Positions 1-58,177 of a stretch of DNA of 64,000 nucleotides are shown here, piece after piece. Location: NCBI GenBank assembly GCA_004431415.1, contig QPMI01000134.1, positions 1-64,000 on the forward strand, read 5' to 3'. The stretch's first letter is position 1; every line of letters starts with the position of its first letter. The notes beneath the pieces were generated by a model. The model did not search any database and was not told the DNA's origin. It saw only the letters and a list, made by a program, of their open reading frames with translations. The stretch is from Cyanophora paradoxa CCMP329. Taxonomy: Eukaryota > Plantae > Glaucophyta. The position numbers and the translations under genes were made by a program.

Positions 1-241
1 GCGCGACGCCCGACCCCCGGCTCGCTCGGGAGCCCTGCGCCCGCGGTCGCTCGCCCCCGAGCTCCGCTCGCGGCCCCCGAGCCGAAAGCTAGGCGGAGCC
101 CGCGGCTGCTAGAAAGGAAGCTAGCCGCCCCACGCCACGCCTGCGCGCCGCCCTGCCCGCCCCGCCCCGCCCGGCCCCCGGCTCGCTCGCTCGCCCGCGC
201 CCCTCGAGCCGAGCCGCCGCATGGGGCGGGCCCGGGCGCAG

Positions 242-3200
242 CCGGAGCAGACGATGTACGCGAAGGAGTACTACAAGCGGGAGGCCGCCGACGCCCTCCT
301 CGACGTCCGCCGCGAGGTGAGCGAGACCCAGTCTCGATGATCCGATCTGGCCCAGACTAGTCTAGCTAGGCCTATCCAGTCCGGTCCTCCGGTCTAGTCC
401 AGCTGGCCCCTTGTCTTAGCTTGCCTAGCATAGCATCTGCCTCTCTTTAGGCCCTAGCTGACTCCTCCTCGCAGTTCTCGGGTGCCGATTCTGCTCTGGA
501 CGGACCACGGGCCGCTTCCGGGCGAGAAGGTCAGGCCCTTACCCGCGGGCCTCTACCCCCGCCCCCTCGCGATCCACTCGCCCCCGGCCATCTTCCACGC
601 CGTGCCGCTCCTTATGCGCTCACGTCGGACTCTAAACCGCGGCCTCCACCCGGGCTACCTACCCACGCCCGGCGTCCCTCACGCCACTCACCGCCCCTCA
701 CGCGCCCCCGCGCCCGCCCGCCCCAGATCCGGCGGATGCACGGGAGGACCCCCTCCCGAACCGGCCCCCGATCCTCAAGTCCGCCCTCGTCATCCGGTCC
801 GTCCGCTCCGCCCGCGCCGCCCGCCCGCCCGCCCTCCTTTCGCTCGTCTACATTAAAAGCTCCTTAGCTTCCATTTCTAAAGTCTCGGAAACTTCCATAG
901 CTATAGCTAGAGTCTCGAACAGCGTCAGCGCGCCCTCCCGGCCGGGCCCTTGAGCAGCCAGCACGGATCATCTGATCTCTGAACTGGCGCGCAGGCGCCG
1001 GCGTGGCGGACGGCGAACTTCCTGTGGGACCCCACGAGCCGCACCAAGTGGGACAAGGTGCCCCGTCCTCGAATTTGATCCTAGATTGGATCTCGTGGAT
1101 TCTCGTGGATTCCGTGGATTTCCTCAGCTCAGATCCCAGATCGTTCTTGAATTTGATCCCTAGATTGGATTCTTTAGAAGATCCGATAGCGGAGCGCTCG
1201 TTTTTCCGAGCGCCCTCAGAGTTTTAGCTTCCTAGCTAGCTTACTTCCCAAGCTCATCTAACCAATTGTTCTCCGGCCCCCCCTCGCCCGCTCGCCCGCG
1301 CGCGCAGCTGGCGCTGCGGTGCGGGGTGGTTGACGAGCTGGAGCGGACGACGCGGGTCGACTACGTCGAGGAGACGAACCTGCTCCCGGGTCACCTCCCC
1401 CGCAACATGGTCCTCGTCGCCACCGTCCAGGTGGGCGCCAGCACCCGTCTGGCTGCCGGGCTCTGGGGCGAGAGGGCGGGCGGGCGCCGGTCCCGCTGAC
1501 ACGGCTCCCTCTCTGCAGCGCGACCTGCACGCGCGCATGTTCGTCATCGCCTACCGCTCCGTCATCCACAAGAAGGGTGCTTCGCTTAACCCTGCTTCAC
1601 CCTGCTTCTCTTTTTCCGCGAGCTGCGCTGTTCTGAACCGGGGCGCGCAGTCAAGGTGGAAGGGCAGTTCATCCGAGCGCACGTCTTCAAGGGGGTGCGC
1701 GACGTGTGGCGGGGCGGGGGGCGGAAGACGGGGCGCGGCACGGCGCGAAGCGAGAGGGGGCGCGGCGCGGAGCTTCGCAAGACTGGGCGGCAATACGCCG
1801 AGCGGCGGGGCGGGGCGGGACGCGGCTATCGATATCTCCCTTCCGGCGCAGCGCAGCTCCGCTAGCTCGCGTCTCGACTCTGGAGCACTAGCAGGAGAGC
1901 CTGACGGGGCGGGGCGCGGGGCGGCAGGGCTTCATCGTGCGCGAGGTCGACGAGCGCAGCAGCGAGCTGACCTACGTCATCCAGATGGACGTCAAGGTAG
2001 CCTACCCCCCCCTTTTCGTCCCCTCCCCGTGACGTCACGCCCACCGTGACGTCGCGCCGCTCGATTAGGGCGTCCTATCGCGCGTCACGGCGGAGCATTA
2101 CTTCGCGCGGCGCATGCTGGCGCCGCAGCAGGCAGGCTTTCCCGTACCCCTCTTGTCTTCCTCCCCGCTCTTCCTCAGTGCCGCCCCCCTCCCCGCTTTG
2201 CAGATCGGGTACGCCCTTAGGATCGAGTACCTGTCCAACTGCGGGAAGGTGTGTGTACCCCGGCCGGGCTCCGCGGGCCCCGTACCCCGTCTCGCGGGCC
2301 GCGCTGACGCCCCTGGCAGTGGATCAAGGGCGGGCTCTTCCCCCCCCGCTCCCTTGTCTCTGAGTCGCGGCACATCCAGGGGGCCCTGAAGAAGGTACGA
2401 GCTGGAGCACGCTCTTGTTTGTTCCCGCGCGTTTCCTCGCTCGGGAGCTGACGGGTACGCGGCAAGATCCGGGGGATGAAATCGCTGGTGTCGTTCCTTC
2501 CGGGGTCCTCGTCGGGGCAGCCGTCGCCCACGGCTCCGAGGAGGAGCAGCCGGGGACCGCGCCCCGCCCCGCCGCACGAGGGCGCGGAGGCGCCGGGGGG
2601 GAGGCCCGCGGGGGGTACGGAATCCGGGCCCACGAGGCGGCGGCGCCCCGCGAGCCCAGGCGGACCCCGAGAGGGCGCGCGTACCCTCCCCGGGCCGGAC
2701 GCCGACGCGCCGTCGCCGCAGCCGTTGCCGGGCCGCCCGAGTCGGCGCAGCCGTCGCGGAAGGCTGCGCGGCTCGCCGCACCGCAGCCGCTCGACGTTGC
2801 GGGCGACCGTTCCCCCTCCCCTTCCCTCCTCCCCGTCGCCGTCGCGGCGGCGGCCGGGGCCGCGCGGCGGCCGCAGCGAAGTCGCCGCAAGGGCAGGGCC
2901 GGCGGGCGTGCAGAGGGGCCAGCGGTCCCCGGCCCTGGGAAGGCGGCGCCCTCGATCGGGAGCGCTGCCTCCCTAGAGGCCGCCCCCGCCCCGGACGCGG
3001 CGGGGCTCCTGGCGACCCTCAAGCCCCGCCCCGCGCTGCCGCCCGCCGCCGGAGCCGGAGCCGGAGCCGGCGCCGGGTCCTCCCTCGCCGCCGCCGCCGG
3101 CGCCGCCGTGCCCCGCCCGTCAACAACGGCGGCGGCGGCGTCGGCTTCTCCCCCGCCGCCGCCTCCGTCCCGGGCTCTTGCCCGACTCCTTCAGCTGGCA

Positions 3201-5276
3201 GCAGCCGGACCAGCGGCGGCCCTCGACGAGCGATGGCCTCGCCGGCTCGAGCCTCCTCCGCCGGGCGCGGTCATCGCGGGCATCAGGTCCGTCCGCCCGC
3301 GCGCCCGCTGCGCTGCGCCGCACAGAAGATGCTTGCTGGCCGCTCTGTCTACCCTTCCATCTCTGCGCACCTGTCCTTTACCCGCCCGCCTCCCGCCCGC
3401 GCGCAGGCGGGCGTCGACGGCGGCGAGCCTGCCGCGCACCTACTCCGGCACCTCCCTCGCATCCACCGTCCTCCTCAACCCGCCCCAAGTGAGAGAGAAT
3501 CTGCTGAGCCTCCTCTAACAGACCCTTCCTCTCTCCTCCCTCGAATCTTCTTCCGCCCCTCACGCCCCTCGCAGACGGCGCCGGCGGGCCGCCGAAGCGG
3601 CCGAGCGGCCTCAGCGCCCTCCAGGTCCCCCCCCCCCCCCCAGAGGCCCCGGGCCCGAGAGGCTCGAATCTGGCCGGACCTGGGCCTGGATCTAGCTCGA
3701 ACTTAGAGAACCTAGAGGACCTAGAGAACGCTGGCGGCCTCCGCGCCTCCTCCTCATCGCGCCGGCAGGCGCTGCTGGACGCGAGTCCGGTGGTCTTCGA
3801 CGCGGAGGAGCTCGCCCGCGAGGAGCGCCGCCTCCGCCGCCGCCGCCGGTGCGAGCCGCCCGCCCCGCCCCGGCCCAGCCCGGCGCCACGTCGTCGCTCG
3901 CTGTAGCTATCTACACCGTGAGTGCTAGAGAACGAGGTCTCTTCTGACGGTGCTGCGCAGGCTGGCGAGGCAGGCGGCGGCGGAGGCGCGGGCGGACGCG
4001 GAGCGCGTGGCGACGCCGGCGGCCCTGCAGCAGCTGCAGCTGCAGCACTCGGCGACGGCCCCGGGGGCGCTCGCGCCGGGCCTGGCGGGGCGGTGGCGCA
4101 GCTCGCCGCGCGGCGCATGTCGCGGCGCATGTCCCTCATGAAGCTCGCCGAGCTGGCAGCGCAGGGCGCCGAGGTCTCCGCCTTTCTGAGGTGCCGCCCT
4201 CCTCCCTCTCGCGCCTCCGCAGAGCCTCACTTCGTTCGCCGCGGCGCAGCTCGGACGGCTCGCCGCTGCGGCAGTCGGCGGGCGGCGGCGGCGGGGCGGG
4301 CGGGTGGAGCGAGGAGAGCAGCTCGGGGAGCAGCGCGGAGGAGGCGGCCGCCAACTCGGCGCAGGAAGAGGACGAGGCCGAAGAGGAGAGGATGCGCGAG
4401 GTGCGCCGCCGGCGCCGCTGTTCGCCTTCGTTCGCTTCTGTCTGCCGTCCGCTGAGGGCGGTCCCGGGTACAGGAGGACCCGCTTAACCTCACGGGCTGG
4501 GCGAACGCTCGCCAGGCGAAGAAGGCGCGGCACCGGGGGGCGGGGGCGGGGCCCGCGGCCCCCGGGCAGGAGGGCAGGGCGGCCGCCGCGGCTGCGGCGA
4601 AGGGGCCGCTCAAGTCGGGCGGGGTGGGGGCCCGCCTCTTCCGGAAGTATATGGCGGTACCCCTCCCGTCCATGCGGCTCCTCAGGGAGCGCGGCTCCGC
4701 TCGCCCTCCCCGGACTCCGCTCGGCTTCTCCCCCCCGGGCCCAGACCGCCGCCGGCCGCGTCCGCGTCTCTACCCCCCTCGACCCCGTCCACCAGGCGGT
4801 GCGCGTACCCCATCCCGCCTCCGTCTCACCCGCCGCCCCCTTGACCGGGTACGGCAGGCTCTGGACTTTGCGAACGCGCGGGCGGAGGCGCGGAGGCTGC
4901 GGCACGAGGCCGGCGTGAGCGCGTCCGCGGGAGCCTCTCCTTCGGCGACCTACCCCCCGCCGGCGACCTCCCGCCGGGCCTCAGATACGTACCCCGCCGC
5001 GGAACAGGCGGGCGTCCACGGCGGACGGGTACGCCGCTCCTCCGCGTCGGGCGGGGGCGCCGGAGGAGCAGCATACTGGCGCCCGCCGGATCCGAACCGC
5101 CGCTCGCCGGCGCCGGGGCCGGGCCGGGGCCCCACGGGCGCGGCCCCGGGCACCTCTCCGTCGCGCAGTCGGCCCCCTCGCTCGGGGGCCTGGGCCTGCG
5201 CTCCGGCGCCCGCCCCGCGACGGTCCCTGCGGAGCCCGCCCGCCCGCATCTAGGCCTGCCCCCGGGGGCGGCGTGA
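242..5276 (+). CDS. START-domain (StAR-related lipid transfer) protein with long low-complexity C-terminus, copy 1 (5' end outside window; many 1-nt homopolymer indels)
   Basis: Same exon chain as copy 2 (position 1 corresponds to 9395). It differs mostly by single-base deletions in C/G runs that break the frame, so either consensus error or pseudogene. Confidence 0.7.
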
Positions 5277-6071
5277 CCCTCTGGTACTAGTGTCCCTGCC
5301 CGAGTCTGAGCCCAGGCTCAAGCTCGCTCTTCTGTGCACTATGGTTTTGTCCTTATTCTAGTAAGCGTTGTGTCTTATATATTTCGGCATCCCACTGATC
5401 CTGCCCCGCAGCCCACTCGCGCCGCACGCCCATGCCAAGCCCGAGTCTGTTTTTCTGCTCCGCTCCCAAGGCCGAACGATAACCCGAGCCCCGTGCCCAA
5501 GCTACCCTAGCCCCGAGCGCTAGCCCGAGCTACCCTCGCAGTCGATCTCGCCGAAAAACATCGTACGTATATACGGACAGACTCGTGATCAAAGACAGAA
5601 TCTTAGGCAGCTAGGATAGAACCGCTAGACAAGAATCACAATTTGGAAAGACAAATTACGCCCAGCCGCCTGAATCACTCAACCGAATTCGAAGGGAAAT
5701 TAAAGACTCTGGCGAATGCAGAGTGCCGGGCCCGCGGCCGGGCCCCCTCGTCGCAGGCCTCGTCGAGGGGGGCGGGGGTGCCACGGTGCTCAGGGAGGGC
5801 TGAACCTCGGGAGCACCGAGAGCACCCGAGGCATCCTCCAGGGGGGGGGGGGGGGGGGGGGGGGGGGGGAGAACGGCGGGGGAGGGGGAGGGGGAGAGGG
5901 AGGGCCTCTCCAGGGGCCCGGGCGCCGCGGAGCGCCGCGCCGCGCGGGCGGGCGGAGGCGGAGGCGCTGACGGCGGGCGGGAGGAAGCGAGCGAGCGACG
6001 GCCTGGGGCCCGACCGGGGCTCGCCGCGGCGCGGGGGGCGAAGCGGAGCCGGGCGGAGGCGGGCGGGGCCG

Positions 6072-9135: not shown

Positions 9136-12100
9136 ATGGCGCACGTGCTGTTCCTCGGCGTGGACCGCGGCGAGGCGCACGGGGCCAAGAAGGTCGCCAC
9201 GGTGCGCGCCCCTCGTCTTATTCTTCTATAAGATTCTTTTACAAGAGCCGCGAGTATTGCTGTTTTTATTCTATCTAGATCTAGACCTTTATTCTATCTA
9301 TCGGCTCGAAGAGGGTCGCCACGGCGCGTGAGCGCGCCTACGGTCGAGGGCGAGATGAAGCTGGGCGGGGCTCGCGGCTGCTAGCAAGCTAGCCGCGCGA
9401 CGCCCGACCCCCGGCTCGCTCGGGAGCCCTGCGCCCGCGGTCGCTCGCCCCCGAGCTCCGCTCGCGGCCCCCGAGCCGAAAGCTAGGCGGAGCCCGCGGC
9501 TGCTAGAAAGGAAGCTAGCCGCCCCACGCCACGCCTGCGCGCCGCCCTGCCCGCCCCGCCCCGCCCGGCCCCCGGCTCGCTCGCTCGCCCGCGCCCCTCG
9601 AGCCGAGCCGCCGCATGGGGCGGGCCCGGGCGCAGCCGGAGCAGACGATGTACGCGAAGGAGTACTACAAGCGGGAGGCCGCCGACGCCCTCCTCGACGT
9701 CCGCCGCGAGGTGAGCGAGACCCAGTCTCGATGATCCGATCTGGCCCAGACTAGTCTAGCTAGGCCTATCCAGTCCGGTCCTCCGGTCTAGTCCAGCTGG
9801 GCCCCTTGTCTTAGCTTGCCTAGCATAGCATCTGCCTCTCTTTAGGCCCTAGCTGACTCCTCCTCGCAGTTCTCGGGTGCCGATCTGCTCTGGACGGACC
9901 ACGGGCCGCTTCCGGGCGAGAAGGTCAGGCCCTTACCCGCGGGCCTCTACCCCCCGCCCCCCTCGCGATCCACTCGCCCCCGGGCCATCTTCCACGCCGT
10001 GCCGCTCCTTATGCGCTCACGTCGGACTCTAAACCGCGGGCCTCCACCCGGGCTACCTACCCACGCCCGGGCGTCCCTCACGCCACTCACGCCGCCCCTC
10101 ACGCGCCCCCGCGCCCGCCCCGCCCCCCAGATCCGGCGGATGCACCGGGAGGACCCCCTCCCGAACCGGCCCCCGATCCTCAAGTCCGCCCTCGTCATCC
10201 CGGTCCGTCCGCTCCGCCCGCGCCGCCCGCCCGCCCGCCCTCCCTTTCGCTCGTCTACATTAAAAGCTTCCTTAGCTTCCATTTCTAAAGTCTCGGAAAC
10301 TTCCATAGCTATAGCTAGAGTCTCGAACAGCGTCAGCGCGCCCTCCCGGCCGGGCCCCTTGAGCAGCCAGCACGGATCATCTGATCTCTGAACTGGCGCG
10401 CAGGCGCCGGCGTGGCGGACGGCGAACTTCCTGTGGGACCCCACGAGCCGCACCAAGTGGGACAAGGTGCCCCCGTCCTCGAATTTGATCCCTAGATTGG
10501 ATCTCGTGGATTCTCGTGGATTCCGTGGATTTCCTCAGCTCAGATCCCAGATCGTTCTTGAATTTGATCCCTAGATTGGATTCTTTAGAAGATCCGATAG
10601 CGGAGCGCTCGTTTTCCGAGCGCCCTCAGAGTTTTAGCTTCCTAGCTAGCTTACTTCCCAAGCTCATCTAACCAATTGTTCTCCGGCCCCCCCTCGCCCG
10701 CTCGCCCGCGCGCGCAGCTGGCGCTGCGGTGCGGGGTGGTTGACGAGCTGGAGCGGACGACGCGGGTCGACTACGTCGAGGAGACGAACCTGCTCCCGGG
10801 TCACCTCCCCCGCAACATGGTCCTCGTCGCCACCGTCCAGGTGGGCGCCAGCACCCGTCTGGCTGCCGGGCTCTGGGGCGAGAGGGCGGGCGGGCGCCGG
10901 TCCCGCTGACACGGCTCCCTCTCTCTGCAGCGCGACCTGCACGCGCGCATGTTCGTCATCGCCTACCGCTCCGTCATCCACAAGAAGGGTGCTTCGCTTA
11001 ACCCTGCTTCACCCTGCTTCTCTTTTTCCGCGGAGCTGCGCTGTTCTGAACCGGGGCGCGCAGTCAAGGTGGAAGGGCAGTTCATCCGAGCGCACGTCTT
11101 CAAGGGGGTGCGCGACGTGTGGCGGGGCGGGGGGCGGAAGACGGGGCGCGGCACGGCGCGAAGCGAGAGGGGGCGCGGCGCGGAGCTTCGCAAGACTGGG
11201 CGGCAATACGCCGAGCGGCGGGGCGGGGCGGGACGCGGCTATCGATATCTCCCTTCCGGCGCAGCGCAGCTCCGCTAGCTCGCGTCTCGACTCTGGAGCA
11301 CTAGCAGGAGAGCCTGACGGGGCGGGGCGCGGGGCGGCAGGGCTTCATCGTGCGCGAGGTCGACGAGCGCAGCAGCGAGCTGACCTACGTCATCCAGATG
11401 GACGTCAAGGTAGCCTACCCCCCCCTTTTCGTCCCCTCCCCGTGACGTCACGCCCACCGTGACGTCGCGCCGCTCGATTAGGGCGTCCTATCGCGCGTCA
11501 CGGCGGAGCATTACTTCGCGCGGCGCATGCTGGCGCCGCAGCAGGCAGGCTTTCCCGTACCCCTCTTGTCTTCCTCCCCGCTCTTCCTCAGTGCCGCCCC
11601 CCTCCCCGCTTTGCAGATCGGGTACGCCCTTAGGATCGAGTACCTGTCCAACTGCGGGAAGGTGTGTGTACCCCGGCCGGGCTCCGCGGGCCCCGTACCC
11701 CGTCTCGCGGGCCGCGCTGACGCCCCTGGCAGTGGATCAAGGGCGGGCTCTTCCCCCCCCGCTCCCTTGTCTCTGAGTCGCGGCACATCCAGGGGGCCCT
11801 GAAGAAGGTACGAGCTGGAGCACGCTCTTGTTTGTTCCCGCGCGTTTCCTCGCTCGGGAGCTGACGGGTACGCGGCAAGATCCGGGGGATGAAATCGCTG
11901 GTGTCGTTCCTTCCGGGGTCCTCGTCGGGGCAGCCGTCGCCCACGGGCTCCGAGGAGGAGCAGCCGGGGGACCCGCGCCCCGCCCCGCCGCACGAGGGCG
12001 CGGAGGGCGCCGGGGGGGAGGCCCCGCGGGGGGGTACGGAATCCGGGCCCCACGAGGCGGCGGCGCCCCGCGAGCCCCAGGCGGACCCCGAGAGGGCGCG

Positions 12101-14727
12101 CGTACCCTCCCCGGGGCCGGACGCCGACGCGCCGTCGCCGCAGCCGTTGCCGGGCCGCCCGAGTCGGCGCAGCCGTCGCGGAAGGCTGCGCGGCTCGCCG
12201 CACCGCAGCCGCTCGACGTTGCGGGCGACCGTTCCCCCTCCCCTTCCCCCTCCTCCCCGTCGCCCGTCGCGGCGGCGGCCGGGGCCGCGCGGGCGGCCGC
12301 AGCGAAGTCGCCGCAAGGGCAGGGGCCGGCGGGCGTGCAGAGGGGCCAGCGGTCCCCCGGCCCTGGGAAGGCGGCGCCCTCGATCGGGAGCGCTGCCTCC
12401 CTAGAGGCCGCCCCCGCCCCGGACGCGGCGGGGCTCCTGGCGACCCTCAAGCCCCGCCCCGCGCTGCCGCCCGCCGCCGGAGCCGGAGCCGGAGCCGGCG
12501 CCGGGTCCTCCCTCGCCGCCGCCGCCGGCGCCGCCGTGCCCCGCCCGTCAACAACGGCGGCGGCGGCGTCGGCTTCTCCCCCCGCCGCCGCCTCCGTCCC
12601 GGGCTCTTGCCCCGACTCCTTCAGCTGGCAGCAGCCGGACCAGCGGCGGCCCTCGACGAGCGATGGCCTCGCCGGCTCGAGCCTCCTCCCGCCGGGCGCG
12701 GTCATCGCGGGCATCAGGTCCGTCCGCCCGCGCGCCCGCTGCGCTGCGCCGCACAGAAGATGCTTGCTGGCCGCTCTGTCTACCCTTCCATCTCTGCGCA
12801 CCTGTCCTTTACCCGCCCGCCCTCCCGCCCGCGCGCAGGCGGGCGTCGACGGCGGCGAGCCTGCCGCGCACCTACTCCGGCACCTCCCTCGCATCCACCG
12901 TCCTCCTCAACCCGCCCCAAGTGAGAGAGAATCTGCTGAGCCTCCTCTAACAGACCCCTTCCTCTCTCCTCCCCCTCGAATCTTCTTCCGCCCCTCACGC
13001 CCCTCGCAGACGGCGCCGGCGGGCCCGCCGAAGCGGCCGAGCGGCCTCAGCGCCCTCCAGGTCCCCCCCCCCCCCCCCCAGAGGCCCCGGGCCCGAGAGG
13101 CTCGAATCTGGCCGGACCTGGGCCTGGATCTAGCTCGAACTTAGAGAACCTAGAGGACCTAGAGAACGCTGGCGGCCTCCGCGCCCTCCTCCTCATCGCG
13201 CCGGCAGGCGCTGCTGGACGCGAGTCCGGTGGTCTTCGACGCGGAGGAGCTCGCCCGCGAGGAGCGCCGCCTCCGCCGCCGCCGCCGGTGCGAGCCGCCC
13301 GCCCCCGCCCCGGCCCAGCCCCGGCGCCACGTCGTCGCTCGCTGTAGCTATCTACACCGTGAGTGCTAGAGAACGAGGTCTCTTCTGACGGTGCTGCGCA
13401 GGCTGGCGAGGCAGGCGGCGGCGGAGGCGCGGGCGGACGCGGAGCGCGTGGCGACGCCGGCGGCCCTGCAGCAGCTGCAGCTGCAGCACTCGGCGACGGC
13501 CCCGGGGGCGCTCGCGCCGGGCCTGGCGGGGGCGGTGGCGCAGCTCGCCGCGCGGCGCATGTCGCGGCGCATGTCCCTCATGAAGCTCGCCGAGCTGGCA
13601 GCGCAGGGCGCCGAGGTCTCCGCCTTTCTGAGGTGCCGCCCTCCTCCCTCTCGCGCCTCCGCAGAGCCTCACTTCGTTCGCCGCGGCGCAGCTCGGACGG
13701 CTCGCCGCTGCGGCAGTCGGCGGGCGGCGGCGGCGGGGCGGGCGGGTGGAGCGAGGAGAGCAGCTCGGGGAGCAGCGCGGAGGAGGCGGCCGCCAACTCG
13801 GCGCAGGAAGAGGACGAGGCCGAAGAGGAGAGGATGCGCGAGGTGCGCCGCCGGCGCCGCTGTTCGCCTTCGTTCGCTTCTGTCTGCCGTCCGCTGAGGG
13901 CGGTCCCGGGTACAGGAGGACCCGCTTAACCTCACGGGCTGGGCGAACGCTCGCCAGGCGAAGAAGGCGCGGCACCGGGGGGCGGGGGCGGGGCCCGCGG
14001 CCCCCGGGCAGGAGGGCAGGGCGGCCGCCGCGGCTGCGGCGAAGGGGCCGCTCAAGTCGGGCGGGGTGGGGGCCCGCCTCTTCCGGAAGTATATGGCGGT
14101 ACCCCTCCCGTCCATGCGGCTCCTCAGGGAGCGCGGCTCCCGCTCGCCCTCCCCGGACTCCCGCTCGGCTTCTCCCCCCCGGGCCCAGACCGCCGCCGGC
14201 CGCGTCCGCGTCTCTACCCCCCTCGACCCCGTCCACCAGGCGGTGCGCGTACCCCCATCCCCGCCTCCGTCTCACCCCGCCCGCCCCCCTTGACCGGGGT
14301 ACGGCAGGCTCTGGACTTTGCGAACGCGCGGGCGGAGGCGCGGAGGCTGCGGCACGAGGCCGGCGTGAGCGCGTCCGCGGGGAGCCTCTCCTTCGGCGAC
14401 CTACCCCCCCCGCCCGGCGACCTCCCGCCGGGCCTCAGATACGTACCCCCGCCGCGGAACAGGCGGGCGTCCACGGCGGACGGGGTACGCCGCTCCTCCG
14501 CGTCGGGCGGGGGGCGCCGGAGGAGCAGCATACTGGCGCCCGCCGGATCCGAACCGCCGCTCGCCGGCGCCGGGGCCGGGCCGGGGCCCCACGGGCGCGG
14601 CCCCGGGCACCTCTCCGTCGCGCAGTCGGCCCCCGCGCTCGGGGGCCTGGGCCTGCGCTCCGGCGCCCGCCCCGCGACGGTCCCCGCGGAGCCCGCCCGC
14701 CCGCACCTGCCCCCGGGGGCGACGTGA
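9136..14727 (+). CDS. START-domain protein with Pro/Ala/Ser-rich C-terminal tail, copy 2 (~19 exons; a further upstream exon is possible)
   Basis: GT-AG splicing gives MAHVLFLG..|PEQTMYAKEYYKREAADALLDVRRE|FSGADLLWTDHGPLPGEK|IRRMHRED..ILKSALVIP|APAWRTANFLWDPTSRTKWDK|LALRCGVVDELERTTRVDYVEE..PRNMVLVATVQ|RDLHARMFVIAYRSVIHKK|VKVEGQFIRAHVFKG|GFIVREVDERSSELTYVIQMDVK|AGFP|IGY.. This matches START motifs (R..WD, PR.F/M, S..H, RA....G, TY....D..G..P). Stop TGA at 14725-14727. Confidence 0.85.
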
Positions 14728-15282
14728 CTCTCTAGTGCGAGTGTCCCTGCCCGAGTCTGAGCACAGGCTCAAGCTCGCCCTTCTGTGCACTACGGTTTTG
14801 TCCTTATTCTAGTTAGCGTTAACGTTGTGTCTTATATATTTCGGCATCCCACTGAGCCTGCCCCGCGGCCCCATCGCGCCGCGCCCAAGGCCGAACGATA
14901 ACCCGAGCCCCGTGCCCAAGCTACCCTAGCCCCGAGCGCTAGCCCGAGCTACCCTCGCAGTCGATCTCGCCGAAAAACATCGTACAGACAGACTCATGAT
15001 CAAAGACAGACTCTTAGGCAGCTACTAGGCTAGGACAGAACCGCTAGACAAGAATCACCGTGGCACAATTTGGAAAGACAAAGTACGTCCAGCCGCCTGA
15101 ACAATTCAACCGAATTCGAAGGGAAATTGTAGACTTTGGCGGAAGCGGAGCGCGGGGCCTCGCGGAGGAGGGCTGAACCTCGGGAGCCCCGAAAGCACCC
15201 GCGGCCTCCTCGAGGAGGGAGGAGGGGGGGAGGGAAGGGCCGGGGAGGGGGGCGGGCCGGAGCCGGGCGGCCGGGCGGGCCC

Positions 15283-15630
15283 TCAGCGGCGGGCGCTCTC
15301 GTCGCAGGCCTCGAGCAGGAGCCGGACGCTGACCCGCCGGAACGCCGCCTCCTTATGTCTTATGTACTTGTGTCTTATGTACTCTGGCCGCGTATAACTG
15401 CAAATTTCGAGGCTCCAAAGGCCAACTTCTGACCTGACCGACCTCGGAGGGCTGTGGGCGGTAGACTCGAGCCGGGGGGCGGGCGGGGCCGTCAGCGGGG
15501 GGCCCCGGCGCCGCATGCCTCGAGCAGCTTGCGGATGCTGAGAGCCCTGAGGTCGACCTCCGCGTAGTACGGGATCGCCTTGCGCGCGAAGACGAGCCGC
15601 AGGTCGGACGGGATCTCCCCCGCACGGGAA
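15283..15630 (-). pseudogene. Fragmented terminal TIR exon, interrupted by a piece of the LRR-SAM-TIR 3' flank
   Basis: GEIPSDLRLVFARKAIPYYAE.. and FRRVSVRLLLEACDESARR* match 58178-58310; the splice acceptor is altered (AG to TG). Confidence 0.75.
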
Positions 15631-15671
15631 GATCAGCTCTGGGGCGGGGGCGCACGAACGGGGTAGCGACC

Positions 15672-16000
15672 CTGCCTCACGCCCTGGTTCCACTCCCCCT
15701 CGTACTTGTCCCCGTTCGTGTACAGCATAACGCCCCGCCCTGCGCTATTTTTAGAAATGGGGGTGGAAGAGTCGAGGGGTACAGGCTCGCACCGTGCCGC
15801 ACGTTGCGGCGCCAGTCGCCGGTGTACACGCGGCCGTCCCAGTACGTCATCGTACCCCCCGCCCCGTCCATCGCGCCCTCCCTCCACGGGCCCTGCACCC
15901 CAGGACGGTTCAGGGTGGGGGGGGGGTGAAGACGAAGGGGGGGTACGGGAACCTGGTAGACGTCGCCGTTGGAGAACTTCATGAGGCCCGAGGCCCGTCT
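15672..16000 (-). pseudogene. MORN-repeat gene fragment (three exons)
   Basis: GLMKFSNGDVYQ|GPWREGAMDGAGGTMTYWDGRVYTGDWRRNVRHG|GVMLYTNGDKYEGEWNQGVRQG fits the MORN consensus YxGxWxxxxxHGxG. Confidence 0.85.
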
Positions 16001-16139
16001 ACCCACGGCCCCTCGTAGACCTGTACCCCCGGGGAAACAACTCATAAGCCTCTCAAAGGAGTGGGGGGAAGGAGTTAAGGAGGGGTACGCACGTCTCCGC
16101 CCTGGAAGCGGCCCCCTCCACACCCCCCCCCCCCCCCGT

Positions 16140-16350
16140 CGCCAGGGTCGTCGCTAGCTGTAGCCGTCTTGAGCTTCTACACCGTGAATGCTAGAGAGCG
16201 AGGCCTCTTCTGACGGTTCCCCGCAGCCTAGAGAGGCAGGCGGCGGCGGAGGCGCGGGCGGACGCGGAGCGCGTGGCGACGCCGGCGGCCCTGCAGCAGC
16301 TGCAGCTGCAGCACTCGGCGACGGCCCCGGGGGCGCTTGGCCTGGCGCTT
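16140..16350 (+). pseudogene. Isolated fragment of one START-gene intron/exon (QAAAEARADAERVATPAALQQLQLQHSATAPG)
   Basis: Near-identical to 56283-56480 and 13330-13520. Confidence 0.85.
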
Positions 16351-16587
16351 CGGGAAAAAAAGATAGTCCTTTCGTACTTGAAAAGTAGAACTTGCTGAAT
16401 TGCAGCTGACAGCTAACTGCATATTGCTAGAAGAAAGCGTCGGCCTGTCAGCCAAGACGCAAGACAATGGACGAGAATCTTGAGCAGTAGTAACTGCAAC
16501 TTCTGAGGCTCCAAGTGCGAACTTCTGACCTGACCGACCTCGGAGCGCTGCGGGCGTCCAGGACGGGGAGGAGGGGCGGCCGCCGGC

Positions 16588-18505
16588 CTACGCGAGCGGA
16601 GGCGGCAGCGACTCGTACGGCTGCGTGTGCTGTCAGCGGCGGGCGAGGGGGAAGGGGGGGAGGGAAGAGGGCGGACGGCGGCGTCGGCGACGGCGGCGTC
16701 GATGAGGGCGCAGAGGCGCGCGATGGCCGCCTGCTGGTACATGTTGCTAAAGAAGACCGCTGAGGGCGGCACCGCGCCGGGACGGGGCGTCAGCGGCGCG
16801 CGGGCCGGCCGGCGCGGCTTCGGAGGGCGCGTGGGGGCGGACCGTTGTGGCGGGAGAAGGCGGCCATGTCGGCAGGGAGGCCGTCGCAGGCGGGGAACTT
16901 CTCGTTCGGATCGTCCACGAAGGGGATGATCGCCTTGCGCAGGCGCGTCCCCTCCGCCAGCTCCTTCCGCACCCTGCGCCCATCCGCGATCGGCGGGGGC
17001 GGCGCGGCGCGGCTTGCGGGGCCGCCGGGCGTTTGGGCGGCACCAGTCGGTGGAGAGGGCGGCCGAGGGCGCCTTGTCCTCGAAGCAGCGGTCGAGGGTG
17101 CCCGGCGTGAGCACGAAGACTGCGCGCGGGCGTCAGGAGCGGGCGGGCGATTCGGCGGGGGTCGCCGGCGGGACACGCCGTCGCAGCAGGAGGCGCGGAG
17201 GGATTCGAGGATCTTCGAGTCGAAGACGCCGCCCTGGAGGGTCTGCAGGTCGAAGAAGGTCTTGTAGCTGCCTGTGGATCAGGCAGGGCGCGCTTCGGGC
17301 GCGAGGCGGGCGCCGGTGGCCGCACCCCGTCTTGTCGAGCGCCTCGCGCACAAACGATGCGAGGTGGTTCCTCCCGTCCAGCCGCCGGTACGTGATGCTG
17401 CGCAGGCCTCAGGGGCGAGCGAAAGGAGCGCGGAGGAGGCTAGGCGGCGCACAAGGCGTGGAACTTGTAGCCGGGGGGCAGCGGCGGGGCGCGGCGGGCG
17501 GCGGCGCTCTGCGGGCGGGCCCGGGGCGCGTTCGGCGCCGCGCTTGAGAGGCCGTGCTCACTCGCGAGGTCGGCGATCTGGCGGAGGGGCCTCAGCCGGG
17601 CCAGGTGAGAGCGAGCGGACGGGAGGGCGGCGGGGCGGGGCCGGCGCGCCTCCTTGAGGACGCGGCGGCGGACGAGGCCCGACTCCACGCCGAGCTCCTC
17701 GCGCAGGTCGCCCTCGGTCAGCTCCAGCAGCATCTTACCGTCCACGGCGCAGCCCTCGAAGGCCGGGGCCAGCTTGCCCAGGTCGAGGGAGCGGAGCCAC
17801 TCGCAGACGTCGGCCACGCGCATGCCCCGCGGGTCCCGCGCCGCGCTGGCGGGGCGGGCGCTGCCGGCGCGGGGCCGCGGGGGCGAGGCCGAAGGGCGGG
17901 GGCCGCTGGGGACGGGCTCGCGTCGGGGGAAGGGAAGCACGGGAGGGGTACACTGACCGGGGGTGGAAGGGGCCGGGGCGGCGGAGGGGCGCGGGGCGGC
18001 GGGCGCAGCGGGGCGCGGGGCGGCGGGCGCAGCGGGGCGCGCGGCGGGGGCGGGCTGCGGTGGCGGGTGAGTGCGCGGTGGAGGACGAGGGGTGAGGGGC
18101 CGGGAGTGGGGCGCACTGCGGGGGCGGGGGCGGGGAGGGAGCGGAGGTAGGCGAGGCGTTCCGCGGTGTTCTTCTTCTTGAGGAGCTCCGGCATGGCCGT
18201 GAAGGGGTTGCCGTCCGCGTGCAGGGCGGCGAGGCGGCCGATCTCCGGCGGCAGCGCCGCCAGCTGGTTGCCACTCACGTCCAGCGTATGCAGGGCGGCG
18301 AGGCGCCCAATCTCCGGCGGCAGCGCCGTCAGCTGGTTGCCGCTCGCGGATGAGGACGAGCACGCGGATGTTCGCCGTTCCCCCTGAGGACGAGCACGCG
18401 GATGTTCGCCGGCCCCGCCGCCGCGATCTCCGCCGCCGGCCACTCCGTCCGCCCCTCCTTCTCCAGGTCCAGCCTCCCCTCCGCCGGGATCCACCCCTTG
18501 CCCAT
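16588..18505 (-). CDS. LRR-SAM-TIR protein with SARM1-like TIR (putative NADase); LRR exon frameshifted as assembled
   Basis: Spliced product: MGKGWIPAEGRLDL..LPPEIGRL x2; SAM (VADVCEWLRSLDLGKLAPAFEGCAVDGKMLLELTEGDLREELGVESGLVRRRVLKE|IADL); TIR (FHAF|ITYRRLDGRNHLASFVREALDKTG|YKTFFDLQTLQGGVFDSKILESLRAS..VFVLTPGTLDRCFED..DW|VRKELAEG..KAIIPF..LPADMAAFSRHN|AVFFSNMYQQAAIARL). A duplication at ~18351-18411 shifts the frame. Confidence 0.85.
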
Positions 18506-21500
18506 GCCTGCGGGGCGGTCAGCGGCAGAAGCGCGCTGCGGGGAGCGCGCCCCCGCCCCGCCCGGCGGGTCCCCAGCCTGCGGGGGGCCGCCCGGCCCGC
18601 GCTGAGCCCCTCCCGCAGGGGCGGTGCACGCGCGCGCCGGGCTCTGCCTTTACCGGCCGCCCCGCCCGCCCGAGTCGCGGCTCGGGGGAGCGATGGCGGC
18701 CTATGGGAGATTGCACCCCACGCCCGGGCGCGCGCTGGGTCCTCCCCCCTCCCCCGTTCGTGGGTTGGCGAACGAGGCAGCAAGCGACGCCGGAGCGTGG
18801 GGCCCCCCCCACAGGCCCGGCACCGACAACTCGCCCCGCATCTTAGCCAACGTCCGCGCGCCCGCCGCGTCGCTTGGTGGGATCAGTGCGACCCCTCGCA
18901 CGCTGCTAGGTGGACCGTGCGGCCCAGAGCGAATTCGAAGCGATTCGTAGATTCTAGACCGGCGGGGTCCGCCCAGCGGCAACTAGCGAGCAACCGGGGT
19001 TCTGCGCCCGCCCGGAGGAGCGCACCTTCGACGGATCGCCTTGCAGAAGCAGAGCCGAGCTTTCGGAACCGACGGAGCCCGCCCGGTCAGAAATCCTCGC
19101 CGGTCGCGTGCTGCCTGCTGGCTGCTCGCCCGCTGTTCTGTGCAGGGGCCTGCGCGCCGGTACAAGCAAGCAATGAGCAAACGACAGGCGAGCGATGCCA
19201 TAAACCCGTCGGCTTCGCACCTGCCGCGATGAATGCCGATTCACCGAAGCGCTTGGGTACGGCCACGTGCACGCCGAAGCGCCGGGGTACGGTCGCGCCG
19301 CAGGCCTCCGCTGCTTTCTTGGCAGGCGGGCGGGTCTGTGAGTTGCATATACCTATAAACGGCGTTCCGTACCGGTGCACTACTGCCTGTCCACTTCAAC
19401 ATGCGCCAGCCTTCCAGAGCGATCATGATCAGGACGCAGGCGCAGCTGCAGCTGCAGTCATCAAGATGCAGCTGCGCCTGCGCACCGGCAGCTGCCGCCT
19501 GGCAGCCGGGCCCGAGGCCATGGCGGAGCACAGCGCCGTCCGCGGTGGCGGGTCGACCCGCTCCTCGTTCAGCAGTACTTCTGTAATCCAGCAGCACTCA
19601 GGCGAATCATCAGCGAAGTTCCGGCGAACGGGGCGCGGGAGAGACGCGGACCAGCTCGATGCGCGCCGGCAACGCGGCGCCGCGCGCGCGCGGCCTGCTG
19701 ATGCACATGGGCGCACGCGTGCACGCAGGCGCCGTCCAATGATGCTTCACCTGTTGACGCTGTACCTGCCTAGGCCTGCAGCTGCGGCTCCCGCGGCCAG
19801 CGCCCCGGCGCCCGGCGCGAGCTGCAGCGCGCCTCTCGGGGCTCCCCGGCGGATCTGCGGGCGCCGGGCCCCGCCCCGCCGGGCCGCGCCGTCGCCGCGG
19901 CGCGGCCCTCGCCCAAACCCCGCCCCCGCCGCCCGCACAGCGCAGCGCCCCGCCGCCCGCCCGCCCCCGCCGGGCGCCCTCCCCGAAGGGCCGCGTTCGC
20001 CCCGGCCCCGCCCCGCCCCGCCCCGCCGCGCGCCTCGGATCCCCTTCCCGCCCTCCCTCGGACGCCTCGCGCGCCCCCGCACCCCCGCCCCGCAGGCCCC
20101 TCGGACCGTGCGCCGGCGCCCCTTCGCACGGGCCGGCCCTTCGGATCCCCCGCCCTCCTCCAGGGGCCCGAGGCGAGCCCGGCCCGCCCCGTGCTTCTTC
20201 TGAGGCTCCAGAGGGATCTCCTCGGGCTGCACCTCAGGTTCACCTGAACATGACAAGAAGCCCGGCCCGAGGACGCCGTCCTGTCGGCTGTCCCCGCCGC
20301 CCGCCGCCCGCCGCCCGCCGCCCGGCCCGCCTTCCCTCCCTCCGAGGCTCCTCGCTTCGAGGAGAGCCGTCTCCCGCCTCGTACCCCCCCGACCCATTCC
20401 TCTCGCGAGCCCAGGGCCTGCCTCGTCCCTCCCCCTTCCCCCCCCCTCCCCCGGGCCTCGAGGTGGGCCCCCTCCCTCCCTCCCCCTACCCCCCCGCCTT
20501 ATCCCCACGGTCTGGCCCCCTCGCCCTCGCCCCCGCCGATCGCAGGCGCGTGGCGCTGGACATCCCTTCCCCCCGCCTTCCCCCCCGGGGCCGCCCCCCT
20601 TTCTCCCTCCGCGGCGGGCCGCCTGCCGCCCGCCCGCGCGCCCCTCCTGCGCCCTCGGGCCGCCCGGCCTCGCCCCCCGCTCCCCCTCCCTCCCCCCCCC
20701 CTCCCCGCTGGCTCGGGCCGTCTGAGCCGTCTGAGCCGTCTGAGCCCTCTTCCTCCGCCCCGCTCCTCCTCTCCCTCGCGCTGCCCCCGCCTGCCCCGCC
20801 CCGCCCCGCCCCGCCTCTCGATCTACGCCGCCCCTCTCTTCGCCCCCTCCTCCGAGGATCCCTCGCGACCGGCCCCCCCTTCGGCCCTCCTCCCCGGGCT
20901 TGCCCTCAAGCTGCTTCCCGACGCCCCCCGGCCCGGCCCCGGCCCGGCCTCCGGCCTCGCGGGCCGCGCTGACGCCTCTGGCGGTGGATCGAGGGCGGGC
21001 GCCGGCTCCCTGCCCCCCGCGCCGTCGCTTCCGAGTCCTTCCTCCACGCCGCCTCCCCGCCGGCGCCTCCCGGCCCCGCCCGTCCCCGCCCCCCGGACTC
21101 CGGACTCCGGGAGGACCCCGGCCCGGGAACCTGCAGTTCATTGTTGCAGTTGGACCCGGGACTCAGACATGATTACTAAGTCACTAGCCTAGTAGTCATG
21201 GTCATGATCACGAGCGCTTGTCCCTTTCAGTGATCATGACTGTCCATATGCATCATGGCATGTGATCGTGACGTCAACATGTACAAGCCTTGAAGTACAA
21301 ACCGTCGAACTATGCACCGCGGCACAGATGTGCAGGGCTCCCGAGGCCTGATCACGAGCACCGGGGGCTCGGAGTTCACTGCAGTGCAGTAACTCCAGCC
21401 TGGCAGAGACTCGTATGCATGCCGCGCTGCATGATCATAATCAGGGCCTTGTTATGCATATGACTGTGAGGCTCTTTGTAGCTCGGCGGCCTAGTACGAC

Positions 21501-21585: not shown

Positions 21586-23700
21586 TTTTTTTTAGTAATC
21601 CCTAGTGTATTAGGGGACTGGTGCCCCAAGTTGACAAACAGCTAATGCTATCTGCCTACCCTAGGCCTAAGCCTACAAACACACGACAAGTCTAGCTTAC
21701 CTCCCCCCTATTGGGTCTCCAGCTAGACTAACCCCGAGGGAATCTCCCTACTGCGAGCCCTACCCCCTAAAGCCACTCTTGCGGCCCTCGGTGGGGCCTC
21801 CCCCAGCGACCGCGCGAGCGCGGCCGTTGGGGGGGTGGGGTTGGGGGCGGGGAGCTGGGGCCGGAGAGTTTATTGGGGCAGGGCCCCGGAGGATTTATTG
21901 CGCACCGCCTCTGCGGTGCCGGCGCCGCCGGGCGCGGGGCCCCCGAGGGAGGGGTTGGGGCCGGGCATCCGGCTGCAGGTCCCGCCCTGCAGGCTGCCAA
22001 CGGCGTAGCGGCCTGCACCTGCGCGAGCGGGACCGGACCTGGCGCGGGCAGGCAGGCCACGCCCGAGGGGCCTGCTCTCCTCCCGGAGCGGGCCTCTCAA
22101 GCGCGAGCGTGGCGTCAGCCCGGCGCGCGCGGGCGGGGAGTGCACACTTCGGGCTCAGGGTCTGTAGCCCAGCGGGGAGAGGCCGAAGATGAGGAGGGAC
22201 TGGATGAGGTCGCCGCGTTGGAGCAGGGGGTGGTACCTTGGGGGGCAGAGAAGGGGGTACGGGGCTCGGCGGAGGCGGCGGTGACGGCCCAGGGGATGTA
22301 GGCAGAGGGGACATCGGTCTGGGGGCGGGAGTGCCTCGGGGTGGAGCTGGCGGGCGCGGGCGGAAAACTCGAATGGGGGCGGTGGTGCGGGGACCGGGGG
22401 TGGCGCCGGCGGCAGTGGGGGGGCCCGGCGGCGGGGGGCGCGGGGCTGGCGGGGCGGGGCCGGTCTTGCGGTTCGACGGGTGACGGCGGTGTGGGGGGTC
22501 AGAGAGGCTCGCCGAGGCGGGGGGTCCGGGGGGGGGGCGGTCCTGTGGATCAGGGGCTGGGACAGCCGGACCTGCACGTCGGGCTCCGCGGTCTCCACGT
22601 GCAGGAAGGTTGCTGCGGGCGGAGGTGAAGCCGGCCGAGTCACGGAGGGCGGCCAGCTCACGCTCACGGCGCGTGAGGCGGCGGGTTCGCGGGGCTGGGC
22701 TGCGGGGAGGGGAGGAGGCTGGGAGGTGTGGGAGGGAGGGGGCTGGGGGGTAGGGGGGGGGGGGGGGAGACGGGCCGGGGGCGGTGGAGGGCCGGTCGGG
22801 CAGGCGAGGGGAGGGGCCGGGGTGACGGAGGGCCCGCTGGGGGCAGGGCGGAGGGGAGTCCGGAGGGGAGAGGGCAGTTGCGAGTCGGGGCCGGGGGAAC
22901 GGGGAGAGACCGACCGCGGACCGGAAGTAGGATTGGAGGGGCGCATCGCCACGGTCATCCCTCTGCCGCGACCTTTGCCGCGGCCCTTGCCGGATCGAGC
23001 TGTGCCGGCGCCTAGTCGGGAGGAGGGGCCTGCCGCCTCCGGTCGGCCTGTCGGAGGTACCTTGATTTCCGTCGAGGCGGGGCGGGGGGGGGGGGGGGGG
23101 CGGGGGGTCCGGAGCTCGCGGCGGCGAGGGTGGAGCCGGGGCCGGAGGGAGCTGGGGCGGACCTCTGGGGCCGGGCCCGGGTGTTGGGGGCCGTTGGCTT
23201 GTGGCTAGGATTCGGGTGAGGATGAGGCTGCGCCAGTGCGCGCAGCACCTGCTGCTGCCATCGAAGGGCGAGTTGGGGTCCGTGAGCACGTCTTCTTGGC
23301 CCCGGACCAGGGCGTCTGCCAATGCACAGACGATTACACCGCAGCTGAAGCGGTCCCGTTGTTCGGGGATGGGGTACCTGGTGGCCGACGCAAGCGGCCA
23401 GGCGGTGGGGTCGTCTGAGGGGAGGTTGCGTTCCCGGCGCTCGAGCTGGAGCCAGCGGAGAATCGGGGCAAGCTTCTTTCGAGCCGACTCTGCGTTTGGC
23501 AGGTTGTAGGCATCATAGAGTTCGGCTCGACGGTCACGTACGTGGATCGCAGCGAAGGTCCAGTGGCCCGGTGAGTGGATCGGGAAGAGCAGGACATCGA
23601 AGTCGAACGGGCTGACCCCGCGGGCGACCCAATTCCCGCCCGAATTACACGGGCTTCTTGTACCCGTTGCCTGCCAACTGCCATACAACCCCAACCACCG
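21586..23700 (-). mobile_element. Poly(A)-tailed, intronless Ulp1-protease-bearing element; probably a deleted non-LTR retrotransposon derivative
   Basis: A8 tail on minus strand (T-run ~21586-21593) after a UTR-like segment; a CPLC..H remnant near 22280-22300; no RT motifs seen; 5' edge at a 44-bp palindrome. Confidence 0.5.
21895..23694 (-). CDS. Ulp1/SENP-family (peptidase C48) catalytic domain, N-terminally incomplete, followed by a Pro-rich region
   Basis: FDVLLFPIHSPGHWTFAAI..LYDAY..PEQRDRFSCGVIVC contains the His-Trp, Asp, Gln and Cys catalytic motifs of C48. Confidence 0.85.
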   Translation of the reverse strand: MGLYGSWQATGTRSPCNSGGNWVARGVSPFDFDVLLFPIHSPGHWTFAAIHVRDRRAELYDAYNLPNAESARKKLAPILRWLQLERRERNLPSDDPTAWPLASATRYPIPEQRDRFSCGVIVCALADALVRGQEDVLTDPNSPFDGSSRCCAHWRSLILTRILATSQRPPTPGPGPRGPPQLPPAPAPPSPPRAPDPPPPPPPPPRLDGNQGTSDRPTGGGRPLLPTRRRHSSIRQGPRQRSRQRDDRGDAPLQSYFRSAVGLSPFPRPRLATALSPPDSPPPCPQRALRHPGPSPRLPDRPSTAPGPSPPPPPYPPAPSLPHLPASSPPRSPAPRTRRLTRRERELAALRDSAGFTSARSNLPARGDRGARRAGPAVPAPDPQDRPPPGPPASASLSDPPHRRHPSNRKTGPAPPAPRPPPPGPPTAAGATPGPRTTAPIRVFRPRPPAPPRGTPAPRPMSPLPTSPGPSPPPPPSPVPPSLPPKVPPPAPTRRPHPVPPHLRPLPAGLQTLSPKCALPARARRADATLALERPAPGGEQAPRAWPACPRQVRSRSRRCRPLRRWQPAGRDLQPDARPQPLPRGPRARRRRHRRGGAQ

Positions 23701-57681: not shown

Positions 57682-58177
57682 CTCTCTCTAGTACACGAGT
57701 GATCCCCGGGGGCGACGTGACTCTAGTGCGATTTCTTGCTCTTCTGTACACTATGGTTTCGTCCTTATTCTAGTTAGCGTTGAGTCTTATATATTCCGGC
57801 ATCCCACTGAGCCTGCCCGGCGGCCAAACGTTAACCCGAGCCCGGATCGCGAGCCCGAGCTACCCTCGCAGTCGATCTCGCCGAAAAACATCGTACAGAC
57901 AGACTCATGATCAAAGACAGACTCTTAGGCAGCTAGGACAGAACCGCTAGACAAGAATCACAATTTGGAAAGACAAAGTACGTCCAGCCGCCTGAACAAT
58001 TCAACCGAATTCGAAGGGAAATTGTAGACTTTGGCGGATGCGGAGCGCGGGGCCTCGCGGAGGAGGGCTGAACCTCGGGAGCCCCGAGAGCACCCGCGGC
58101 CTCCTCGAGGAGGGAGGGAAGGGGGAGGGAAGGGCCGGGGAGGGGGGCGGGCCGGAGCCGGGCAGGCAGGCAGGCCC

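Follow-up and report, generated by a model that had tools for sequence, protein, structure and literature searches.

A transcribed, frameshifted LRR-SAM-TIR gene copy with a SARM1-type TIR domain in Cyanophora paradoxa

Results

Structure of the Gene tig00000532_g1884

The window, the whole stretch of 64,000 nucleotides of DNA that was analysed, contains the Cyanophora paradoxa gene tig00000532_g1884 at positions 16588-18505 on the minus strand. An earlier note on this DNA had placed a SARM1-like receptor gene of a non-animal eukaryote between these bounds; the bounds (start ATG at 18505, TAG stop codon at 16590-16588) and the type of host were both confirmed. The gene comprises, in this order, an LRR stub, a Pro/Ala linker, one SAM domain and a TIR domain. 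A 100% match to the SAM stretch identified the public annotation tig00000532_g1884.t1 (P0001; EukProt EP00741_Cyanophora_paradoxa_P001945), whose SAM-TIR exon model was identical to the one obtained here. Homology searches were performed with genomic references and P0001 as queries, and the exon-joined model was translated for frame checks. Pfam detected in P0001 an LRR_14 match (residues 68-108, below cut-off), SAM_1 (residues 221-281, E 9e-13 to 3e-12) and TIR_2 (residues 319-457, E 4e-6).

Eight short, GC-rich introns interrupt the coding sequence (minus strand: 18116-18055, 17649-17578, 17452-17398, 17325-17268, 17178-17120, 17043-16974, 16842-16760 and 16676-16621), with donors and acceptors placed by motif; the second and fifth are of the GC-AG type. 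Their removal leaves a single open frame, which extends over 412 codons between 18341 and the stop codon at 16590-16588.

All gene features described below lie on the minus strand. The 5' UTR contains a probable intron of 71 nt (19150-19220) with consensus donor, branch and acceptor and a counterpart in a paralog at 60039-60107, in a bin of low RNA depth, as well as an intron of 518 nt (18508-19025), marked by an RNA-only joint whose depth includes paralogs; the paralog version of the latter measures 115 nt. An insertion of ca. 400 nt within this second UTR intron (18516-18916), which the paralog lacks, is multicopy and showed a DNA depth of about five times that of single-copy sequence. Upstream ATGs from 19610 to 19348 were rejected as start codons, as they do not reach the LRR frame after splicing of the UTR introns, and an ATG at 19201 sits inside the probable UTR intron and would be in frame with LRR-SAM-TIR only upon intron retention. 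The start ATG, the family N-terminal cap and the first LRR strand occupy 18329-18505, followed by the LRR stub (18117-18341), which holds about two 23-residue repeats, the last of them shortened, and a C-terminal cap. Intron 1 (18055-18116; 62 nt, GT-AG) is required by the frame. Exon 2 (17650-18054) encodes the Pro/Ala linker and the SAM domain (17650-17829), the latter recognised by Pfam and PDB searches and covered by RNA contigs over 17650-17842; a second linker intron at 17957-17906 was ruled out, as it breaks the frame. The 72-nt intron 2 (17578-17649) separates this exon from exon 3 (17453-17577), which carries the end of SAM helix 5, a linker and TIR strand 1.

The remaining TIR exons encode the Y-R-R motif and helix A (17326-17397), the BB loop (17179-17267), the SS loop with its D-R-C motif and a five-residue insertion (17044-17119), the catalytic glutamate (16843-16973; codon 16963-16961) and the last part of the domain (16677-16759), in which Asn occupies the position of SARM1 H685 while Y687 and Q688 are kept. 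The terminal exon (16308-16620), covered by mismatch-free RNA contigs over its full length, holds the final 10 codons, the stop codon and the 3' UTR; it lacks a C-terminal CaaX tail. A 240-nt gene fragment at the end of the 3' UTR (16107-16346) is repeated at 3868, 13293 and 56249. In addition, a 66-nt element in the 3' region (16491-16556) recurs with 88% identity at 15395-15460, in the 3' region of an orphan TIR exon described below.

Transcription and Splicing

Two RNA-type runs from different studies and two DNA-type runs were mapped over 15300-19700. The gene is transcribed and spliced, and its splicing is in part confirmed by RNA. RNA depth amounted to ca. 25-175 over the SAM-TIR exons versus 0-8 over the adjoining 15741-16181, a contrast which indicated that the signal did not derive from DNA. 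Contigs from both studies spliced the GC-AG intron 17578-17649 with zero mismatches and thereby joined the SAM domain to the first TIR exon, in agreement with the claim of the earlier note that SAM directly precedes TIR. An RNA-only joint skipped the GT-AG intron 16760-16842, and RNA contig pieces ended at the exon edges 16620, 16843, 16972/16974 and 17453. A further RNA-only skip of 65 nt (18053-18117), possibly paralog-derived, lies 3 nt from the modelled intron 1 and leaves the frame unchanged. An RNA joint at 17712-18019 was taken as a paralog or low-complexity match. DNA depth over SAM and TIR was uniform (65-89 in run X1) with zero mismatches, which fits a single copy. Among the mapped runs, none of the contigs bridged LRR and SAM, and the region 18100-18530 was swamped by paralog LRR contigs, which kept the scar described below from view.

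A Frameshift Scar in the First LRR

The ATG at 18505 corresponds to the family start, and the N-terminus was 74-79% identical to those of paralogs. Its frame, however, halts at codon 59 (TGA, 18331-18329), and in the assembly the LRR is out of frame with the start codon. The cause lies at 18345-18376, where a 26-nt unit already present at 18385-18410 is repeated and, together with six templated bases, takes the place of most of the early LRRs. This stretch is a net 31 nt shorter than its counterpart in the paralog at 59.5-59.8 kb and looks like a deletion repaired by templated insertion. Downstream of the scar, about two LRRs and the C-cap are left. A continuous frame from the start ATG across at least three LRRs, by which an intact receptor was defined, is absent from the assembly. 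As assembled, tig00000532_g1884 most likely makes no full receptor and this copy is probably degenerate. An exact look-up of the 58-residue early-stop product in public contigs gave no match and hence no independent check on the scar.

The gene might nevertheless be a functional copy with a very short LRR, if a 65-nt intron at 18397-18333 removed the scar or if the scar were an assembly error. P0001 indeed splices across the scar by means of a GT-AG intron, which is of typical size and carries a branch-like motif 22 nt before its end; apart from the scar, the gene is intact, and it is well transcribed. However, the annotated intron consists of LRR-coding sequence that is exonic in paralogs, the +5 G found in eight of the nine other donors is missing from its donor, its acceptor is an Asn-Gln codon pair, and its joint was absent among the joints listed. 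Moreover, the P0001 annotation includes a 5' exon devoid of RNA support. With respect to an assembly error, DNA contigs agreed fully with the assembly wherever the gene is single-copy, and consensus errors do not typically take the form of a templated 26-nt duplication. About two repeats would also make a poor sensor. We consider this explanation unlikely.

Alternatively, re-initiation at ATG 18194 could yield a sensor-less linker-SAM-TIR protein that acts as a helper or amplifier by co-polymerising with intact LRR-SAM-TIR proteins. This ATG is the first after the early stop, follows an upstream frame of 58 codons, is in frame with SAM-TIR and has a purine at -3. The SAM-TIR part carries no lesion, and the mRNA is maintained even though eight introns follow the early stop. 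A recent lesion accounts equally well for the intact remainder, however, and re-initiation after 58 codons is generally inefficient. Loss of the N-terminal domain renders SARM1 SAM-TIR constitutively active and lethal (10.1101/2020.08.05.238287), so that a sensor-less product would be expected to do harm, unless a single SAM requires nucleation. Overall, a role of this kind appears quite improbable.

The preferred reading of tig00000532_g1884 is that of a recent pseudogene or donor copy. What speaks against it is that the transcript is abundant and that the 412 downstream codons and all splice sites are intact, which would be unexpected for a long-dead pseudogene; in addition, neither reads nor RNA contigs showed the scar.

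The TIR Domain Resembles SARM1 in Sequence and Predicted Fold

The TIR motifs quoted in the earlier note all fell within exons and in the correct order. When compared with PDB sequences, the TIR domain matched SARM1 and TIR-1 only (E 3e-20 to 4e-18), the next matches being a plant TIR (E 0.65) and TIRAP (0.65 or worse); searches with single exons gave weak SARM1 matches (E 0.6). Identity to the TIR of bovine SARM1 (P0125) was 34%. An AlphaFold model of SAM-TIR had a pLDDT of 90, and Foldseek searches with this model returned SARM1 or TIR-1 at all of ranks 1-37 (TIR rmsd 2.0 Å, TM 0.89 by target).

Residues were numbered according to SARM1, anchored on the supplement of 10.64898/2026.04.20.719644 and on P0125. 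F565, Y568, R569, R570, L576, D594, G601, F603, D627, C629, W638, N679, Y687 and Q688 were kept, as was the catalytic glutamate E642 (E402 of P0001), whose retention the earlier note had correctly recognised. Changes were observed at W662 (Phe), E596 (Gln) and H685 (Asn), so that the second-subunit residues W662, N679, H685 and Y687 read Phe, Asn, Asn and Tyr. H685 and Y687 are required for SARM1 activation and W662 is less so, and the H685A substitution blocks SARM1 (PMC11874154). His occurs at position 685 in one of 11 Cyanophora TIRs versus 33 of 36 other eukaryotic SARM1-like TIRs; among other, bacterial-type relatives, His was found in 57 and Asn in 7 of 103. The catalytic Glu and the nicotinamide-side pocket were invariant in all 11 Cyanophora TIRs. 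Judged from these residues, the TIR is probably, though not certainly, able to cleave NAD+.

A single SAM domain was found by Pfam, by a family HMM and in the model, versus two in tandem in SARM1; the SARM1 octamer can therefore not be assumed. The best PDB match of the SAM was SARM1 SAM1, and its identity to animal SAM1 domains was 31-38%, versus 27-31% to single SAMs of protists. Cyanophora also holds a second SAM type (P0007, P0009). Together with the closer resemblance to animal SAM1, this indicates that SAMs may have been exchanged, and a piecemeal assembly of the LRR-SAM-TIR domains is possible.

Relatives and Phylogeny

Among 1.84 billion representatives searched, 4192 matched. After the Cyanophora paralogs, bacterial-type TIRs, animal SARM1 and protist proteins followed with similar scores and 33-45% identity; named relatives included SARM1-like proteins of Thrips, Bos and Macrostomum, as well as proteins from Salpingoeca, Picozoa and Rigifila. 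Word-index homologue searches returned Cyanophora proteins or few others and cannot show absence elsewhere.

Two trees were inferred from 149 columns, a quick tree of 150 rows and a careful tree of 75 rows, with rows chosen by similarity to the query; the careful tree had no distant outgroup, and P0137 and near-duplicates were left out. Cyanophora TIRs were monophyletic in both trees (98/92 in the careful tree), on a long branch. Together with animal SARM1 and protist SAM-TIRs, they were separated from 44 other, mostly bacterial-type TIRs in the careful tree (support 92/93, unstarred) and from the remaining TIRs in the quick tree (SH 95). Forcing Cyanophora beside one bacterial-type subgroup was 11.8 log units worse, although not rejected (p-AU 0.069). 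On the comparison of SARM1 with bacterial TIR_2 that the earlier note had proposed, the grouping with eukaryotic SARM1-like TIRs was thus favoured, but a bacterial-side placement was not rejected. A SARM1-type identity of the TIR, as claimed in that note, is supported by sequence and predicted fold and favoured by the tree. The bacterial-type TIR-PEGA protein P0096 was placed unstably within the SARM1 side, and two relatives from the other side had a prokaryotic gene context.

With respect to the N-terminal domain, Pfam found LRR only and no ARM domain in P0001. The single-SAM protein P0105 of Picozoa has an N-terminus homologous to the ARM of bovine SARM1 (24% identity over 239 residues, pairwise E 1e-7), and Pfam ARM matches were found in P0081 (L002) and in P0111 of the choanoflagellate Salpingoeca. 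The Rigifila protein (P0091) and P0045 seem to have no SAM. None of the non-Cyanophora relatives examined carried an LRR. The wide occurrence of ARM-SAM-TIR, set against an LRR found in Cyanophora alone, favours a history in which LRR took the place of ARM in this lineage; on the sequences compared, this would be the likeliest course. Of the sensor swap proposed in the earlier note, this history was retained; the present copy, with its frameshift and about two LRRs, is not an intact receptor as assembled.

A Family With Variable LRRs and Probable Exchange of Effectors

At least six LRR-SAM-TIR paralogs were found in Cyanophora (P0002-P0006, P0009, P0012), along with paralogs of ZZ-SAM-TIR, SAM-TIR-TIR and WW-TIR architecture. 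With its family N-cap, 23-residue LRRs, SAM and TIR, tig00000532_g1884 is a member of this family, and its identity to three paralogs was 69-76% overall and 83-90% in the TIR. Some of P0004, P0005, P0007 and P0009 have a Gly-2 myristoylation-like N-terminus or a C-terminal CaaX. Across 24 family repeats, LRR positions 2, 3, 5, 7 and 8, which are solvent-exposed on the strand, had entropies of 2.2-3.2 bits versus 0 for the framework.

A segmental duplicate lies in the same window, with 10555-15623 and 18220-20843 matching 53507-58309 and 59479-61383. Its paralog (58178-59795, minus strand) shares the promoter, 5' UTR and N-cap and encodes ca. 11 LRRs, followed by a different TIR without a SAM. 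In nine of its repeats, which are not independent, codons at exposed LRR positions differ only non-synonymously. The frame closes at TGA 58967-58965, just ahead of this different TIR, which bears the conserved Glu; the paralog may thus encode an LRR-only product or be a broken copy.

The 3' end of another TIR gene, left as an orphan (15395-15623, minus strand), matches the last exon of the paralog (58155-58309) and lies downstream of tig00000532_g1884 at 15.4-15.6 kb. An RNA joint at 15347-15557 was discounted as splicing, since it was present in DNA runs too. MORN-repeat coding fragments with a weak Pfam match and little RNA lie between the orphan exon and the SAM-TIR gene (15650-16050, minus strand). 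The orphan exon is a probable leftover of a displaced effector, and the simplest reading is that a SAM-TIR cassette with MORN-repeat fragments displaced another effector behind the LRR exon; the direction of this replacement is deduced from the orphan exon.

Elsewhere in the window, a segment of 5-6 kb occurs in three copies (1-5737, 9395-15352 and 53507-58247) that are 89-97% identical, corresponding to a tandem 9.4-kb duplication and a copy 43 kb away. The duplicated segments are separated by a low-GC block (26000-50300; ca. 0.50 vs. 0.72) with a Helitron_like_N domain at 47109-47555 (E 3e-14), which is probably a large Helitron-type insertion with cargo. A long ORF at 21895-23694 (minus strand) begins with His-Trp, Asp, Gln and Cys motifs that, by eye, recall a cysteine protease of the Ulp1/SENP type.

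The family TIR could also be a weak or non-enzymatic scaffold, or serve non-immune signalling, its likeness to SARM1 reflecting ancestry only. The H685-to-Asn and E596-to-Gln changes and the long branch would be consistent with this, and biochemical output is not fixed by TIR phylogeny (PMC13142454). Against it, the catalytic Glu and nicotinamide-side pocket are invariant across the Cyanophora TIRs, position 685 varies among bacterial-type relatives too, and immune receptors typically show hypervariable LRR faces, turnover of copies and shuffling of domains. This alternative was regarded as improbable.

Discussion

The ancestral role of SARM1 is open; a bacterial origin is thought likely, and the protein has been studied almost only in animal axons. 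To our knowledge, immunity in glaucophytes is essentially undescribed. A search of the open-access literature yielded no paper on the LRR-SAM-TIR architecture or on Cyanophora TIRs, and Cyanophora was not named in the parts of the text and supplements of two 2026 TIR surveys that were consulted. SARM1-like proteins are known from choanoflagellates (PMC6040629), and clade 8 TIRs from amoebae, green algae and dinoflagellates (PMC13142454). While SARM1-like TIRs outside animals are thus already known, the Cyanophora LRR-SAM-TIR family appears to be undescribed, as no paper on it was found.

We consider it reasonably probable that tig00000532_g1884 belongs to an expanded family of cytosolic proteins whose LRR-SAM-TIR architecture is based on the execution module of SARM1, and that this copy is a recent transcribed pseudogene or a donor copy. 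In SARM1, rings of SAM domains crowd the TIRs, and the N-terminal domain is inhibitory; SAM-TIR that lacks it is active and kills cells (10.1101/2020.08.05.238287, PMC8295901). By analogy, intact family members may be ligand-gated, NAD+-cleaving receptors. Their hypervariable concave LRR face would bind a ligand, most likely pathogen-derived, and binding would release or cluster SAM-TIR. Head-to-tail SAM contacts could then raise the local TIR concentration, a two-stranded TIR assembly could form the NAD+ site, and cleavage of NAD+ to ADPR or cADPR might lead to signalling or cell death, which would give the family a role in immunity or death. For the LRR in the role of the ancestral ARM, inhibition and mere clustering are both conceivable. 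Ectopic recombination between family copies would reshuffle LRR exons and effector cassettes, and in the present copy the deletion-duplication scar in the first LRR would have left a gene that is transcribed and spliced but yields no full-length receptor.

A wider reading, which we put forward only tentatively, is that of a modular innate-immune system that joins a hypervariable LRR exon by recombination to interchangeable effectors, including a SARM1 SAM-TIR derived from an early eukaryotic ARM-SAM-TIR, with sensor-less copies as helpers or as a recombination reservoir. If true, the SARM1 execution module would be an immune effector of ancient eukaryotic origin whose sensor can be swapped. 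The occurrence of LRR-SAM-TIR in a glaucophyte, alongside the ARM-SAM-TIR of choanoflagellates and Picozoa, suggests that the module is old among eukaryotes and serves in immunity. The Cyanophora family moreover offers natural single-SAM, H685-variant proteins with which the requirements for SARM1 activation can be probed. The value of the findings rests with the family, whereas tig00000532_g1884 mainly illustrates turnover and exchange of effector cassettes.

Several known systems share part of this organisation. Bacterial clade-8 TIR_2 proteins (e.g., CHASE2-TIR, TIR-NTPase) are 36-42% identical to the Cyanophora TIR and individually score as close as SARM1, but they have no SAM, have a prokaryotic gene context and fall on the opposite side of the tree. 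Toll-like receptors and lamprey VLRs likewise have LRRs with a variable concave face, whereas the Cyanophora TIR is far from those of TLR and TIRAP. No hydrophobic stretch indicative of a signal peptide or transmembrane segment was seen in the tig00000532_g1884 translation, and the Cyanophora LRR genes showed no sign of somatic assembly as in lamprey VLRs. Plant TIR-NLRs combine a cytosolic LRR sensor with an enzymatic TIR activated by oligomerisation, an arrangement that is predicted for Cyanophora. In contrast to these plant receptors, the Cyanophora proteins have no NB-ARC (the Pfam scan of P0001 found neither NB-ARC nor NACHT), SAM is the presumed oligomeriser, the domain order is reversed and the TIR is unrelated at clade level.

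Protist SARM1-like proteins lie on the same side of the tree, and those of Picozoa and several environmental proteins share the single SAM; unlike the Cyanophora family, they have kept an ARM-type N-terminus, and those examined have no LRR. Animal SARM1 and C. elegans TIR-1, which are ARM-SAM-SAM-TIR NADases, resemble the Cyanophora proteins in TIR sequence, fold, catalytic Glu and the presence of a SAM1-like SAM before the TIR. Cyanophora differs from them in having LRR for ARM, one SAM rather than two and Asn at the position of H685, and in a multigene family with shuffled partners, of which the copy described here is frameshifted.
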